The notes under the pieces: generated by a model | What the model was told of the DNA's origin: nothing | The model's database searches: none | The model's input: only the letters and a program-made list of their open reading frames with translations | Made by a program: the position numbers and the translations under genes | Origin: Phallusia mammillata | Lineage: Eukaryota | Assembly: GCA_965637545.1 (NCBI GenBank) | Contig: OZ281495.1 | Location: 4,526,001-4,590,000 of the forward strand | Direction of reading: 5' to 3' | Length of the DNA stretch: 64,000 nucleotides | In this document: in pieces, positions 47,101-57,700 of the stretch | Numbering within the stretch: the stretch's first letter is position 1 | Layout of the letters: the number at the start of each line of letters is the position of its first letter

Positions 47101-49883
47101 CTATTCTTCATCAAAATATTACTTGCATCTCAACACTACTGCCACTGATCAGGAGACAACCATTTATGTGTTGGATGCCTTGCGACTACAATTGGCAAAA
47201 AAGTCCTTTACAGTTGAAACCAGTAGGTGTTTTTTCCAACAGTATTTAAATTTGTTTAATACATTTATACGCTAGATTTCTATAATGATTTTTCATGTAA
47301 TGATTTTCAGTCAAAAATAGACCATACGTTCATGTAAAAACATGACTTTGTGACACATCTTATGCCATTCATAAAACAAAAGAATCTAAATCTGTATAAT
47401 ACTGAGAATTATGTACCTAATTACTTCTAAATTTATTTAGACTGTTTCATTTGTTCAAGTGAAGTGAATTGTTCGACATTAACATGTGGCCTTAACTGCA
47501 CAACCCAACTCAATTGCGTTGGAAATTACACTGGTAGTAAAACAGGAGTTTGTCAAGATGATTGTTCTTTTTCAGAAACGGGTACTTGTTGCAAAGGTAA
47601 TCAATAATACATACGGTAGCAAAGACCTGTAAAAGGACACTATTTGACAAGAAGCATTTTCTTGATATTTTTTGTCCACCAGGCTGCTCTTTACCGACAT
47701 CTATTGGTTGTGGCTGTGAACAGGAGTGCAATATTAGTTCAGCCAAGAATTCTTTGCACTGTGGTGAAAGCATCCAAGTGACGTGTACAAACAAGTGCGA
47801 GGCGGGGACTACCGAAGTTCAATGTAGCTCAGAAGGCAACTTGACCGCAAAATTGTGCAATCCAAGTAAGTTTTGATTTTTTCTGGCCAGAAATGCCATT
47901 TTGCCAACTACCGACCAGTTTTGACTTTCGAAAGACTTTTTAGTTGATTTATGTGTCAAAACGTAATTGTCTTTTTTTGTATTTTGATTTCTTTTAACTA
48001 CTTTTACACAGTACAATAAGAGAATAGGGAAGATAAACAGCCTGAATTGCATATAATTGATTGCAAAATACGTCAAACGATACCTTCATCGAAGAACATT
48101 TTATTCCTAACGTGCGTCGAATACTTGACCTACTTTACATTGATATTGATATTTTTGCTTGCTATTCAATTTCGGCAATTTTTCAACACCAATCATGTAA
48201 AAACATAAGCAAACATACCCACCATGCAATGTTGCGTACCAACATAAGGAGTTTTTACAAATAGATCCAGATTTTTAGACATAATCACTCGGGCTATTTT
48301 CAGTAAAATGCTTGGTGCCGGACTCAATAAATTGCGGTTGTCAAGAAGATTGTAGCTTTGCGACATCAAGCGGAGATGAAGTTATTTTGAATACAACTAT
48401 CTCGGTGCCCTGTCCACAAGGTTGCACTGGAACTGCCGTTGCACAATGTGGAGATGATGGAAAGTTTGTGGTTACGCAAACTTGTGCTGACGGTATGGTT
48501 TGGTTGTAGAGCCAAAAAAGCACGACAGCTTCCCAAAACCAACGTTTTGCCCAGTGATTTTTTGTTTTGTTTTTTATAACGGTTTGCATTGGGGTGTGCG
48601 AAAGGTGGTTCACTTCCAATATCATATATATTTTTTTTTATTTGAGAAAAGTTGGTAATATATCTTCATTTTGTTAATTTCTGTTTCGTTTCAGTGGAGT
48701 GTGTAAGGCCTGAGTCAATTTTTTGTGGTTGCGAAAGTGAAGAGTGTAGTTTCCCTGAAGGTGACAACGTTCAATTCGGCCAAACTGTTCAACTTGACTG
48801 TCCTGTCGGTTGCAATGGAACCGCTATAGCACGCTGTTTGACAGATGGAAACTTTGAAACAACGGATTGTCCAGGAGGTAATCATGTTGCATGCAGGGAT
48901 ACGTTAAAAAATATTATGTGTGAAATTTAAAAATATGGTGTAAAAATTTAAATGTATGGTGTACAAAGCAAACGGTATTGGGACTATTGTGGTTGGGAAA
49001 AGGTTAGTTATTAAAAATAACCTATTATAATACATAGTCGTGAATTGTCCCCAAAGCTGCAAATATCTAAGGTCGTTAAGCTTCCAATCAGAATCGAGCA
49101 CATATTTGTAACATCTCGAGTTAGTAACTCTACCCATCGTTTAAGCCAGGCATCAGCAAACAGAATTTAAATGCTACACGGTGTCTTCAGTGAACCATTC
49201 CCATTTATATATTCATGACATATATCTGTGGTCATTTCCATTAACGACCACAAAATCGCATAATGTTTGCACTGATTGAGTATGGGAAAACCATACCCGC
49301 GCCTTTATCACAATATTAAGTCCAAATACTGCAGTTAGAACATGGAAGAAGCAGCAGCTAGTTACGAAGGGACGATATACTAAAACAAATTTGTACCGGC
49401 GGAACATTTTTTTAGACAGCTCAACAATGTGATTCGACCTATAAACGTTACTGCATACAACGTCCAACATTCACAGTTTCACAGTACATTTTATTTTAGC
49501 AACATTACGTAACGCCTGTTTGTACTACTTAATTTTGAGCAACTTCCCGCAATATCACAGTACACAGATTGTTTTTTTTCCAATTTGTTTCACAACAAGG
49601 TAGACTTCTCATTGTTTCAAGTAAATCTATATTGTTTTTTTCCACATTTGTCTTTATTTCTATTGCCACGCAACTTTATTAATGACCTTAAACTTATAAC
49701 GGCAATGTCTTTGAAAAGAGTATAGACAGTGACAGCGGTTTATTTGCTTTTCTTGTTTTAGGGGACGATAAAGGAAAATCTTTGTCTGCCGGAGCAGTAG
49801 CTGGAATAGTAGTTGGATGTGTATTAGGGTGTTGTATGATTGCGGGGGCGATTTATTGTTGCTGCTGTAGAGGAAAAACATAA
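47101..49883 (+). CDS. Gene F: type I membrane protein with four Cys-rich CCP-like modules, TM and a YCCCCRGKT tail; 5' exons (probably from ~46530) unresolved
   Basis: Exons 47101-47222, 47441-47596 (10 Cys), 47683-47865 (9 Cys), 48304-48492 (8 Cys), 48695-48877 (8 Cys) and 49762-49883 (AGAVAGIVVGCVLGCCMIAGAIYCCCCRGKT*). The module exons are symmetric phase 1-1 with GT/AG. Candidate upstream exons at 46715-46794 and 46945-46987 do not join in phase. Confidence 0.75.
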
Positions 49884-52658: not shown

Positions 52659-55600
52659 ATGGAAACGTTTACTGGAAGATGCCAAAAGCTTCGCCAGATT
52701 ATTCTTTACTGTAGTTTTTTGCATCAACTTATGTGTAAGTAAGTGGTTTTATATATCTAGACAAAACATGTAACATATTATTACACACTCTGCGCATTAT
52801 AGGAGCTTAATACATCAGAAAACATTTATTTTATATCTATATAAACATCGAGTCGATAAATAATAAGTAAGCGATAGACAGTGCACACTGTTTTCTCAAA
52901 AAGATCTCTTCGGTGCATTTGGTGACAAGACAAAAGTCGTGTTGGCTAGCGCAGCAAAAAATGCACCCTAGCTTGTTTTCATGCTTTTTGGCGTGTAGCA
53001 TTCGAAAAAGTTATCGATTCCTAAAGCCATACATTATTCAATATGTTTAATTGATTTTAGTTGTAGTAAATGTCGGTGCTTCGTTTTCTGACCTGACCGT
53101 TGAGCAGCCTGCTTCCGCTTATAACTACACAGCAATTTTAGCTACAACAGCAACACGGACTATGGACAATGCTACGCTTACTTGGACAATTAATGGCGTG
53201 AGTAAACATTGGAGAAAAAATGGAATACTTAACGCAAGCTAGAATATAACACCAACAACATTAAAATTTTAGACTGACGTTTACCAAGTTGACGACAGTC
53301 TTACTCAAACTGCAACAACTGTCTATGCAACAAAATATCAACCGTTTATAAGTATATTGTGAGTTGTACAGAAATTCTGATTCTTTTCAGCATGGCTAAC
53401 CACGGTTAATTTTACCAACTAGAGCAGGGGTTCCCAACCGGGGGTACTCGTACCCCTTGGGGGTACGAGATTGAACAGCAAGGGGTACGAAGCTCCTTCG
53501 CCACAAAGCAGCTTTTCAAACGAATTTCACAGTAGTCAGTACAGTTTTATTTTGAAATTGTAAATGATTATATGGTATATGCCATTACGGCCTTTGCTTC
53601 AAAAAACACACAAATATCTGCAAATAATTGTTGTTATTTAGTAAGAAGCCTCATTGTCTCATAACAATGCGTTTTTTACTTGCTGTCAGCAATAAACAAC
53701 AAAGTTAGGAAGAAAACGCACAGACAAATGAGGCATTTATTGTAGTCTTGCAGTAAATCTGCTATCTCTAGAACCAGAGAAGTTGTTTTTATATTAAATG
53801 AACTGTCACTACCATTTTGTTTTGCGTAACATCTTTAATTTGGCAATATGTATATAAATCAGGGAGTCGAGCCGGAACTGAACCCGAACCAGCGAACCGG
53901 TTAATTTCATTAAACCCGAACCGATTACGATTTTGTAAAAACCTGAACCGGAGTTGAACCCAATATTTTGTTTGGCGTCGGACCTGAACCGGAACCAAAC
54001 CATTAAAAAATGCAGTCTGTTTTATAATTTGCAATTTTTTTCAAAACACTGAAGAATACGCGAGATATAGGGCGTGTCAAAAATAACAGTGCTCCAGTGA
54101 AATTATTTTGAAGTTTGATAAGGCCAGGTTTAAAAACGACAAACCAGTTCGGACCGCGGATAATTGCCCAAACCGGAACCAAACCCAAACCCGAAGATAC
54201 ACATTTTTGAAAACCTGAACCGAACCAGAACCCTTAAAAACAAAACCAAGTGAACCCAAACCGAACCTGAACCAATATGACAAGCAGTTAGACTCCCTGA
54301 TATGAATATTTCCATCATAATTTTTTGGGGGTACGAAGAATGCTCTGACCTGGCAAGGGGGTACGAGCAGCAAAAAAGGTTGGGAACCCCTGAACTAGAG
54401 GTACACAGTACCAAAGCAGGAGTTCGAGTTACGGAGCAAAAACAGTGTTGCGTAAACCCTTTTATATATCGGTATAGGGTGTCAATTTAGATAACAATCA
54501 CTAAATTTTATTTATTTCTGCCAGTTGTTTCAGATAAACGATACAAAGATTCCCTGTTTTTTGGGGTTCAATGGGTTCAAAGCGGTTAAGAACACTGGTC
54601 CAAAGCAATGTTCCTGTACTACCCTCAGCAACAAAGTACATTTACAGTATTACAACATTTTGTATTCTAGAATTTTCAAGCCTTCGCCGACATCCGTATA
54701 TATGGAGTTAAGTGTCAAACTGCAACTGTTTATGGACACACTTCCAGTTCAAGTTTCGGACCTGACAGAATCTACAAATGCTGTAACTCTCAATGTTTCC
54801 GGTGTGTAACCTCATGATTAAATTCATCACTATTCAAATATTTACTTTTGTTCACTCTTAAAACAGAGTGTGTGGCAGACAACAATACATGTGTGACACC
54901 AAACGTAACACACTCTCCGTGCGGTCTTGGATGTAACATAACATACACATGTACTAATGGATGTTCTGGTGAGACAGTGTCTGCTTTCTGTTCTCATGAT
55001 GCGACTTGGAGTAATTCGCCACGGTGCACAAGTAAGTTTACAACAAATTAAACTTTTTATAGGCAAATTTATAACATATAAAACGATATTACAAGAAATG
55101 AAGGCTTTAGTGTTCACCACATACGGAGACAATATATGGCACTTGTTTATATAATGTTTTATGTAAGGTTTTTTTCACGGGGTTTGAAACCAGGACACTC
55201 CCGGGGACGAATCCCGATCAGGTTTTTTTATGTCTGTATATGGGTCAGGCGCTCTCGACTATTCGGAAAAGTTCCTGCTCGTTTTATGTAAAGTGAGTAC
55301 ATTATGAATTACGTCCAGCCCGAGAGCGACCACTTGTGTGGTATCGCACACGATTCTACTTGCCACGTTAAACCTGAGGCCAGTACAATGGCACAAGCAA
55401 ATAAAAGTGTCACTGCTTTCGTACCTGCCAAAGTTAGGAGATTTAATGTGATTAATTACTGTAAACAACTTCAACAACAAACAACCTTTTCTGTATCACT
55501 AGAAATATCAAATGCACTATATCATTTGTTTTGTAACACAACATTTTTTTTCAGAAAAGGAACAGCTTTCACGTAAGTAGCAGCAAACTATGTTTTAGAT

Positions 55601-56383
55601 TGACGTAATATTACTTACCTCTGTGTTGTCTAATCTAAAGGGCTGGAGATATGCCTGATTATCTGCTCTGTTTCACTGTTTATCGGAATTCTACTGGGCT
55701 GTTTGTGGGACACATTTAAAGGTAAGCATACGCTAAAATAGTAAAGACCTGTGAAAAGGACAGTTTTTTTTTTTTTTTTTGCTTTGATTTGAAGCACACA
55801 GGTCGACTTTAAGTTTACTACAAATGCAGGAAAAATTCAAAACTTGTAATTGGTTCACTTCCTTGTGGATACAAATTTGTAACTATTTTCAGATGACTAA
55901 ATAGTGACAATTTGCCACAAGACTGTTAAAAGGCCTGGAGTAAGTGCATACTGTTTAGATCACACTCTGAAGAGCCATGCCTTTGTGATGTTACCCATGG
56001 GCATCAAATAAAAGCAAACTGGCTTTAAACAAATTCTTGAAAACCAAAGTAGTTTCCATTTAGTGTCATTAAAATCTACTTAAAAAACGTTTGTGCGAAA
56101 ATGTAAATTTGCTTATATTCCAAAAGATTATTAAAGGTTAGCTAAGTGTAAAGACAAAGAATTTAATCAATGTATTTTGACAGATCTATGCTGTTGCTGT
56201 GCATACCGATGTGAGGACACATGTTATCTTATCTGTAGCTGTCGTAGCGAAGAGACTCTCTGTTTCAAATGTTTCTGCAAGCATAAGGATTGCTTATCTT
56301 GTGGCTACAGATGTGGAGAGGATAATAATTGTTGTTGCGTCAGCTGTTCATGCAACTCCAAAGTTGAAGACCATCCATCTTAA
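52659..56383 (+). CDS. Gene G: signal peptide - Cys-less Ig-like domain - 8-Cys CCP-like module - TM - Cys-rich cytoplasmic tail
   Basis: Exons 52659-52734, 53061-53197, 53273-53358, 54671-54801, 54867-55031, 55641-55721 (GLEICLIICSVSLFIGILLGCLW, TM) and 56184-56383 (stop). Phases 1/0/2/1/1/1 join without stops. The CGLGC module matches the first F module (CGLNC). Confidence 0.75.
53425..54392. mobile_element. Non-autonomous hAT element (968 bp) in a gene G intron
   Basis: Perfect TIRs CAGGGGTTCCCAACC / GGTTGGGAACCCCTG and a perfect 8-bp TSD AACTAGAG (53417-53424 and 54393-54400). Confidence 0.95.
53860..54299. mobile_element. Nested hAT-type MITE with internal GAACC(C/G)-rich repeats
   Basis: TIR CAGGGAGTC / GACTCCCTG; 8-bp flanks ATATAAAT / ATATGAAT (7 of 8 match); many aacccgaacc-type internal repeats. 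Confidence 0.8.
55176..55278 (-). mobile_element. tRNA(Leu-like)-derived SINE-like element
   Basis: Close copy of 26604-26707 (cccggggacgaatcccgatcagg..tatgtctgtatatgggtcaggcgc). Confidence 0.7.
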
Positions 56384-57179
56384 CCTAGCTGTTAATTTTT
56401 TTCACGCACTATATGCTAATCTATTTCAATGTTTGAAGTGTTATACAAAAGCGCCATATTTAATTTAGTGTTCTTGTCGTTGTTAAAGTATCCTCGATTT
56501 CGAAATTGTGTGTTTTGTTTTCTAATAGTATTTGGGTGAAGTTCAAACTTTTTTTATCGCATTTTAGCAGTTATCAGAAGACGTGTACAATTTTGATATC
56601 CGCAAGTCCATCAAAACATCAAATGCATAAATAAGTATTTTGCGTTAAAAACACTAATCACTGACTGGCTCTAGGTAACTCAACCACTAACTGGTAGCTA
56701 AGAGCAATATTGGTCAACACAATTATTTTGCTAGTGCGGATATTTAATATAAAAAAATTAACGCCTGGTAGAAATAAGAGTAACATTTTTAACCAAGTGT
56801 CAGGTTATAGCTATTACTAAACATAAAAACATACGGCCTCATCTTAAACACAAATCATTTAAAATGAAGGAAACTGATTCTATTTGTGTTGTATTTTACA
56901 AAAAAAGGTTTGCTCGATGAGAGATAAAATGTAAAAAATGATGTAGCTTTCACAGTCAGCGTGGTTCGTTGCTCAGAAGTTTGATGAATTCGAGATTACA
57001 TGCTTGTAGAACTGTTTTTAAATAAGATTTTATCTGCAGTGTTTATCGTGCCTACAATCTTTTATGTTAATTATATACTGCTGACGTAAGAGTTAAACAA
57101 ACGTACGCAGGTCTAGAGTTAAATTCAAATACTTCGCATCAGTTTTTGATCGAGGTCGATTGCTATGTAAAACACCAAC

Positions 57180-57700
57180 TACAAAATATCGTTGACAGAC
57201 GTGTACCAACTTGGCGACAGTTCTACTCAAACTGCAAATATTCTCTTTGCTACAAAATACCAACCATTTCAAAGTATAAATAAGCTATTGCTGACAGGCA
57301 TAGTATCAAGTTTATATAGCTTCATAAACTTTATTCCTAGGTATATTGTTAGTTGTACATAAACTCCGATTCTTTTAAGCATGGGTTTTCAACCAGGGTC
57401 ACGTATCCCCTGGAGTTATAAAGCACCAATGTGGTGAGTGCGTTGTAAATTATGATGAAAAAATTAAACTAGTGTGAATCTTTATATGAAGAGGTAAGGC
57501 ATGTCAATTTATTTCACAATTTATAATACTACTTCATTAATTTTTGTCAGTCATTTTTGGTCAAAGGGTAAGTAATTTACAATGTACGAACGCAAAAAAA
57601 GGTTAAGAACCACTGCTTTTTACCAAAATATTCCAGTTCTACCGTTGACGTCAAAGTACATTTACTACGATTGTATCATAAATGAAATAAAAAATATATT
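57180..57700 (+). pseudogene. Orphan duplicate of gene G exon 3 and following intron
   Basis: Reads DVYQLGDSSTQTANILFATKYQPFQ versus G TDVYQVDDSLTQTATTVYATKYQPFI. The acceptor AG is lost, and the downstream intron sequence matches 53352-53400 and ~54600-54660. Confidence 0.7.
57380..57615. mobile_element. Old hAT-type MITE (~236 bp)
   Basis: Degenerate left end CATGGGTTTTCAACC and right end GGTTAAGAACCACTG; flanks CTTTTAAG / CTTTTACC (6 of 8 match). Confidence 0.55.

Follow-up and report, generated by a model that had tools for sequence, protein, structure and literature searches.

The window analysed here, by which we mean the whole 64 kb stretch of DNA (G000:C2:4526001-4590000 within a 240-Mb assembly), consists of AT-rich, intron-rich eukaryotic DNA with a GC content of ~35%. 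Two of its genes, F and G, are described below together with two paralogues, H, located just beyond the end of the window, and P14, located at C2:4.40 Mb (L014, G000:C2:4396000-4405999, minus strand). In gene F, upstream of G, a sushi-like exon at 47467-47589 is accompanied by three 'CGC' modules (its Cys modules lie at 47.4-48.9 kb) and by a terminal transmembrane (TM) exon (49763-49883, plus strand), in which a Gly/Ala-rich membrane helix is directly followed by YCCCCRGKT and a stop codon. The C terminus of F, ..GAIYCCCCRGKT, is contained within the TM exon (..AIYCCCCRGKT and stop), and its four-Cys end resembles a miniature version of the tail of G. The CGC modules are present in H, P14, and F and absent from G. 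A model joining F and G into a single gene was rejected, since a sushi-like exon, CGC modules, a TM exon, and a stop codon all belong to F itself.

Gene G, rebuilt with the paralogues as guides, comprises eight in-frame exons on the plus strand, with a total of 852 nt encoding 283 residues plus the stop codon. All of them are open and in phase, and their splice sites are canonical except for the donor of exon 1. The predicted product appears to be a small type I membrane glycoprotein in which a signal peptide precedes a Cys-free domain and a single divergent sushi/CCP module, followed by one helix and a cytoplasmic tail of 66 residues.

Exon 1 (52961-52994) carries the start codon and a short signal peptide (MHPSLFSCFLA..) and ends in phase 1. 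Its donor is weak (T/GTAGCA), and an alternative end at 53009 (AAAAA/GTTATC) is likewise in phase 1, whereas the short signal exons found at the corresponding position in P14 and H end with T/GTAAGT, also in phase 1. The weak donor region (52994-53011) may mark decay or inefficient splicing in G. Exon 2 (53061-53197, donor GTGAGT), 45% identical to its counterpart in H, encodes the first part of the Cys-free glycosylated ectodomain (..NATLTWTING). The exon that follows, 2b (53273-53358), is 86 nt long, runs from phase 0 to phase 2, encodes TDVYQVDDSLTQTATTVYATKYQPFISI, and is matched in H by an exon with good splice sites (L013 4043-4128). Without it, the frame would be lost between exons 2 and 3 in G as well as in H and P14, and a junction of exon 2 with an acceptor at 54648 was dropped once this conserved exon had been found; automatic gene models may overlook it. 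Exon 3 (54671-54801, 52% identity to H) encodes the end of the Cys-free glycosylated domain (..LPVQVSDLTESTNAVTLNVS), which spans ~118 residues. Exon 4 (54867-55031, phase 1-1) encodes the putative sushi/CCP module with its eight Cys residues ('PCGLGC...ATWSNSPRC'), and exon 5 (55555-55572, phase 1-1) is an 18-nt mini-exon, (K)KEQLS, which keeps the frame and is flanked by ttttttcAG and GTAAGT. The membrane helix, (R)LEICLIICSVSLFIGILLGCLWDTFK, is encoded by exon 6 (55641-55721), which is present as a single copy in its own genome and ends with the phase-1 donor AAAG/GTAAGC. Exon 7 (56184-56383) is the terminal one and encodes the Cys-rich tail followed by TAA.

A partial duplicate of exon 2b (71% protein identity, still open) and a piece of the intron following it are found at 57195-57278 and 57594-57665 (plus strand). 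The duplicate is located ~0.8 kb past the stop codon of G, with no other G-like exons accompanying it, and seems to be the remnant of a local duplication between G and H.

Ten exons on the chromosome carrying G are paralogous to exon 4, and the alignment of 11 members reveals the conservation of C18, C22, C28, C41, and W47. The Pfam Sushi family matches two of these 11 members (best E 3.7e-5), with no Pfam match for the exon of G taken alone, and a profile of the exon-4 family searched against the PDB identifies CR1 (E 6e-4), CD46, CSMD1, and DAF. In an AF2 model of exon 4 (pLDDT 80), nearly all of the top Foldseek matches are CCP modules (TMq 0.5-0.69), with E values of at least 0.07 for this small domain. 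The profile and the model together identify the product of exon 4 as a divergent sushi/CCP module. Six N-glycosylation sequons are located in the ectodomain exons of G and none in the helix and tail, in agreement with the proposal of the first-pass annotation that G encodes a predicted single-pass surface protein. Since the signal exon, the six sequons, and the sushi module are all N-terminal to the helix, and no sequon is present in the tail, the latter is most likely cytoplasmic. Unlike the usual positive-inside flank, the segment directly past the helix is net acidic (DTFKD..ED). The helix ends with ..LLGCLW, the CCCC cluster occupies residues +7 to +10, and eight Cys residues are found within the first 24 positions.

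The tail and TM exons join in phase, with a junction codon composed of g (55721) and at (56184-85) that specifies Asp, and with the acceptor ttttgacAG directly preceding the tail exon. Translation of 56186-56382 (plus strand) yields LCCCCAYRCEDTCYLICSCRSEETLCFKCFCKHKDCLSCGYRCGEDNNCCCVSCSCNSKVEDHPS and then TAA, beginning with LCCCCAYRCED and ending with VEDHPS. Counting the junction Asp, the tail comprises 66 residues, 19 of which (29%) are Cys. Both the Cys count and the in-phase joining had been reported in the first-pass annotation and are confirmed here, the latter at the level of the predicted donor and acceptor. The Cys residues form clusters of eight (CCCCAYRCEDTCYLICSC), three (CFKCFC), and eight (CLSCGYRCGEDNNCCCVSCSC), separated by charged linkers, with the overall pattern xxCCCCxxxCxxxCxxxCxCxxxxxxCxxCxCxxxxCxxCxxxCxxxxxCCCxxCxC that includes three CxC and three CxxC motifs, as well as CCC. 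The remaining residues include three Tyr, two Phe, two His, seven Lys/Arg, and several Leu/Ile/Val. The internal repeat noted previously as AYRCED/GYRCGED is real but modest and extends wider than these motifs, over ~22-24 residues (CCCCAYRC-EDT--CYLICSCRSE vs. CLSCGYRCGEDNNCCCVSCSCNSK), with its score equalled by two of 500 shuffled sequences. A test for an amphipathic helix in the tail gave no signal, and AF2 modeling of the isolated tail (pLDDT 54.8) was uninformative and set aside.

The open reading frame of the tail has no ATG (Met), and the intron preceding it holds just two weak combinations of an ATG with a donor; with no Met in the tail, an upstream exon is needed, and the tail would have no protein start on its own. 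In-phase alternative acceptors located upstream would start the exon at 56142, 56154, or 56160, adding 8-14 residues to the tail. Frame +1 of the tail exon (56181-56465, plus strand) is also open, over 95 codons, and is Val/Ala-rich; its openness results from the TGY richness and does not point to a second product.

Homology searches for G were run exon by exon, and the search of representatives with the tail was performed without a length limit, so that it was the one search able to reach full-length relatives of ~280 residues. With E values of up to 10 allowed, no family in Pfam-A matched the tail, including the Cysteine-string protein, Sprouty SPR, CYSTM, and keratin-associated Cys-rich families. 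A phmmer search of PDB sequences returned nothing below E 0.4 and no metallothionein, with vanabin 1VFI unmatched at E up to 10, and a phmmer search of 1.84 billion protein representatives (of ~15 billion proteins) returned no match at E up to 1e-3. Searches of a word index, of ESM Atlas features, and of metagenome contigs were all blank, and a search of its own 240-Mb genome, at both protein and DNA levels, found the tail itself and no paralogue. The 55721-56184 junction had no match in the metagenome contigs, a result of little weight, since this collection is unlikely to hold RNA of this animal. Descent of the tail from the extracellular Cys modules was considered and rejected, with E > 6 in comparisons of the tail with the sushi and CGC exons. 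The predicted tail is therefore an orphan with no detectable relatives in the databases searched, which bears out the earlier description of it as unusual.

The 3' part of P14 (~6924-7278 of L014) has the same layout as that of G, with a TM exon, a phase-1 GTAAGC donor, and a terminal exon GIKAVIDFIMKHLKCCCCCCCCCPCSDEPVKTDIELET with a stop codon, which ends with ..KHLKCCCCCCCCCPCSDEPVKTDIELET and is followed ~40 nt further on by AATAAA. Nine consecutive Cys residues in this exon are encoded by a (TGY)9 run, after which PCSDEPVKTDIELET follows; the membrane-proximal part of P14 (NWKCIWEAIKKCLMAIWSGIKAVIDFIMKHLK) looks amphipathic. Two further relatives, L017 7225-7447 (C2 5.42 Mb) and L025 223-447 (5.69 Mb), have a Gly/Val-rich helix followed by 9 and ~13 Cys residues, respectively, within 40-50 residues. 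These two are 42% identical (E 9e-14) and share several Cys positions (..FE.AKT.LC..C....CC), with both exons running on through phase-1 GTAAGT donors. Kinship of the tail of G with these two Cys-rich stretches was rejected (E 3.5-67). Some other relatives are short of Cys past the helix, with one such residue in L016 and none in L024. In H, the TM exon (L013 6885-6995) ends with ..EKWFEGKI and a phase-1 GTAAGT donor with no Cys past the helix, and neither its tail exon nor any Cys-rich exon was found within 13 kb past it (L013, L027). A five-Cys reading frame (L027 48-131) was dropped as the tail of H, being out of phase and having a poor acceptor. Clusters of Cys predicted to lie just inside the membrane are nevertheless a recurrent and partly conserved trait of these putative receptors, and G is its extreme case.

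Splice-site and coding features indicate that the tail exon is probably used in the protein encoded by G. TGY codons are confined almost entirely to a single frame (19, 0, and 1 in frames 0, 1, and 2, respectively), and the non-Cys residues are written with varied codons, which excludes a simple repeat. The GC content of the exon is 41.5%, compared to ~33% nearby, raised as it is for coding exons. Among all stop-free windows of 66 codons in six frames over 64 kb, the tail exon ranks first for Cys, with 20 TGY codons compared to 12 in the runner-up. In addition, 176 AG acceptors are present in the 3.3 kb past the TM exon, and the longest phase-1 terminal frames are all located inside the tail exon.

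These features bear on the strongest alternative, according to which the tail exon would lie outside any working protein, either because G is a young duplicate that is silent or in decay, or because the TM exon ends the message or joins elsewhere; in that case, the Cys-rich frame would have arisen in this lineage as a by-product of TGY-rich DNA, and read-through of the TM exon would give ..TFKGKHTLK and a stop. Several observations are consistent with such a fate, namely the lack of any protein match, relative, or junction match in the databases searched, the single copy of the tail with no paralogous one, the weakness of the exon-1 donor in comparison with GTAAGT of P14 and H, the absence from G of the CGC modules shared by H, P14, and F, and the partial duplicate of exon 2b just downstream, indicative of local rearrangement. 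Furthermore, no canonical poly(A) signal was found by a hexamer scan within 1 kb of the stop codon of G, with the first ATTAAA at 57463 and the first AATAAA at 57686, although sequence reading together with the same scan points to a possible variant signal, CATAAA or AATAAG, at 56626-56635 (plus strand), ~245 nt past the stop. Against this alternative stand the eight open, in-phase exons with canonical sites at all positions but one, the restriction of Cys codons to one frame amid otherwise varied codons, the raised GC content, and the concentration of the longest phase-compatible frames in this very exon. Moreover, the TM exon ends with a strong phase-1 donor, a feature of the family that demands an exon downstream. 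On balance, we assign to this alternative a small, though appreciable, probability.

The role proposed for the tail is that of a heavily S-acylated, membrane-apposed segment that would set the sorting or clustering of the receptor, as an extreme form of a habit of the local family. Cysteines facing the cytosol beside a membrane helix are classic targets of DHHC S-acyltransferases. In the SARS-CoV-2 spike, clusters of membrane-proximal Cys located up to 20 residues from the helix are S-acylated at several sites (PMC8379822). By analogy, the tail of G could serve as a substrate of DHHC enzymes, with the CCCC cluster, seven residues beyond the helix, acylated first. Once acylated, this cluster would draw the later ones to the inner leaflet, where they might be acylated in turn, and the tail would then be spread flat along the membrane, anchored to it by multiple lipids. 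We can speculate that the role of such an anchor would lie in the control of sorting, of clustering, or of partition into ordered membrane, rather than in the docking of signaling proteins, and that the tail probably originated from runs of TGY repeats and one internal duplication. The hydrophobic and aromatic residues mixed among the Cys residues (CYLIC, LCFKCFC, CCCVSC) are also compatible with acylation. Among the four roles offered in the first-pass annotation (metal binding, redox sensing, multiple palmitoylation, and the clasping of a kinase), multiple palmitoylation fits best, because the relatives carry CCCC, nine consecutive Cys, and 9 to ~13 Cys after their helices.

Some features argue against this reading. 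The 19 Cys residues spread over 57 positions go well beyond any acylated tail that we know of, and many of them are in CxC or CxxC spacing, which is also suited to metal binding. The acidic flank past the helix, the weak donor of exon 1, the distance to a canonical poly(A) signal, and the absence of such a tail in H count against it as well, as do the lack of an amphipathic-helix signal and the blank searches of the word index and of the protein representatives. Overall, we give acylation as the main role of a tail that is indeed expressed about an even chance of being correct; this estimate is the product of a good probability that the exon is used and a slightly lower, still favorable, probability that acylation is then its main role.

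A different role is suggested by the composition of the tail, which could act as a membrane-tethered metal-thiolate domain, metallothionein-like in function. The two eight-Cys clusters and CFKCFC would then bind Zn, Cd, or Cu, or contribute to the handling of vanadium or of redox state on the inner membrane face, and the tail might serve as a sensor or buffer tied to the sushi ectodomain, with the proximal CCCC cluster possibly still acylated. Classical metallothioneins are small proteins that stand on their own and contain few aromatic or His residues, if any, and mammalian metallothionein has 20 Cys residues in 61. The description of the tail as 'metallothionein-like' in the first-pass annotation holds as far as Cys composition is concerned, since 19 of 66 residues place it within the ~25-30% Cys, with CxC, CC, and CxxC motifs, that is typical of metallothioneins, and the two His residues and the two-cluster layout created by the internal repeat are also in line with metal binding. 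It does not extend to the architecture of the tail, in which aromatic residues and His are present and a start codon is missing, and which is joined in phase to a TM exon rather than free-standing. None of the five chordate metallothionein Cys motifs, compared as regular expressions (ascidian 12-Cys, appendicularian 12C, vertebrate alpha, and cephalochordate 11C and 9C, taken from Table 1 and the text of PMC8476144), matches the tail, nor did the Pfam, PDB, and sequence searches reveal similarity to metallothioneins or vanabins. Three Tyr, two Phe, and several Leu/Ile/Val residues are likewise foreign to classical metallothioneins. The plain Cys runs of the relatives (CCCC and nine Cys), placed beside the helix, resemble acylation sites and not metal sites, and seven Lys/Arg residues are few compared to the V(IV)-binding surface of Vanabin2. 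On the other hand, metallothionein domains of tunicates arise de novo and by modular duplication (PMC8476144), and vanadium is accumulated by ascidians, whose Cys-rich vanabins are cytoplasmic (PMC9486056). With these arguments taken together, metal binding as the function of the tail is considered unlikely, and slightly less credence still is given to its strict form, in which the tail of this sushi-type receptor, in a metal-accumulating ascidian, would have originated de novo as a genuine metal-thiolate or redox domain and would link extracellular binding to the metal or redox state at the inner face. Acylation and metal binding are not mutually exclusive.

The remaining option, in which the tail would be a docking module sharing Zn with a cytoplasmic partner by analogy to the CxC of CD4/CD8 and the CxxC of Lck, could draw on the three CxC and three CxxC motifs and on the lack of a Tyr-based signaling motif in the tail, which would make a partner necessary for signaling, but it is very improbable, as two Cys residues suffice for such a clasp rather than 19, no partner is known, and no similarity to CD4/CD8 tails was found.

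If the exon is used, the cytoplasmic tail of G would, to our knowledge, surpass in Cys density that of any other cellular single-pass protein, and it would be a clear-cut case of a protein segment newly created from TGY-repeat DNA and duplication. The predicted receptor family would have placed runs of Cys (four, about 10, and 19) just inside the membrane several times, and such a series of run lengths lends itself to studying the effect that the number of acylated Cys residues has on receptor sorting, clustering, and partition into membrane domains. Should metal binding be true instead, the tail would represent a new type of membrane-anchored metallothionein.

Comparison of the tail and of the whole predicted protein with known systems places them as follows. 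The 12-Cys domain of ascidian and thaliacean metallothioneins, found in the same animal group, is similar to the tail in its Cys content (~30%), in the presence of CxC and CC motifs, and in internal duplication (PMC8476144). However, its pattern, [CxC]x5[CxC]x2Cx2Cx2[CxC]x4[CxC]x3-6CC, is unmatched in the tail, which contains aromatic residues, is located behind a helix, and has no sequence similarity to this domain. Vanabins, which are found in vanadium-rich ascidians, are likewise cytoplasmic and rich in Cys, with 16-18 such residues (PMC9486056). They differ from the tail in being soluble four-helix proteins with nine disulfides and with Lys/Arg metal sites, whereas the tail is poor in Lys/Arg and matches neither 1VFI nor a Pfam family.

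As far as the ectodomain is concerned, CR1, CD46, CD55, and the complement-receptor-like genes of ascidians resemble G in having CCP modules in a type I membrane protein, and G itself is a member of a tandem gene cluster. The predicted product of G differs from them in having one module, with eight instead of four Cys residues, and an additional Cys-free N-terminal domain. We know of no CCP protein with such a tail.

Cysteine-string protein (DNAJC5) has a very Cys-dense stretch, thought to act as a multi-lipid membrane anchor, but it is a soluble J-domain protein with no helix in the membrane, whereas G has no J domain and its Cys residues are arranged in spaced clusters rather than in one string. 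In Sprouty and SPRED, the SPR domain forms a long cytoplasmic segment, rich in Cys and palmitoylated, which keeps the protein at the membrane. This domain consists of ~110 residues, is found in proteins devoid of a membrane helix, and shows conservation throughout the animals, whereas the tail of G is an orphan with no Pfam match.

A parallel in design is the endodomain of the coronavirus spike, a type I glycoprotein which, like the predicted product of G, has dense Cys clusters right past the helix, followed by an acidic stretch; the P14 segment ..CCCCCCCCCPCSDEPV.. shares this design. In the spike, the Cys residues are contained within ~20 residues, while in G 19 of them extend over 57; there is no sequence relation between the two, and G is a cellular sushi-domain protein for which acylation is a prediction. 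The predicted tail of G would be a new, orphan variant of the known Cys-rich acylated cytoplasmic tails, and its assignment as such is a well-formed prediction.
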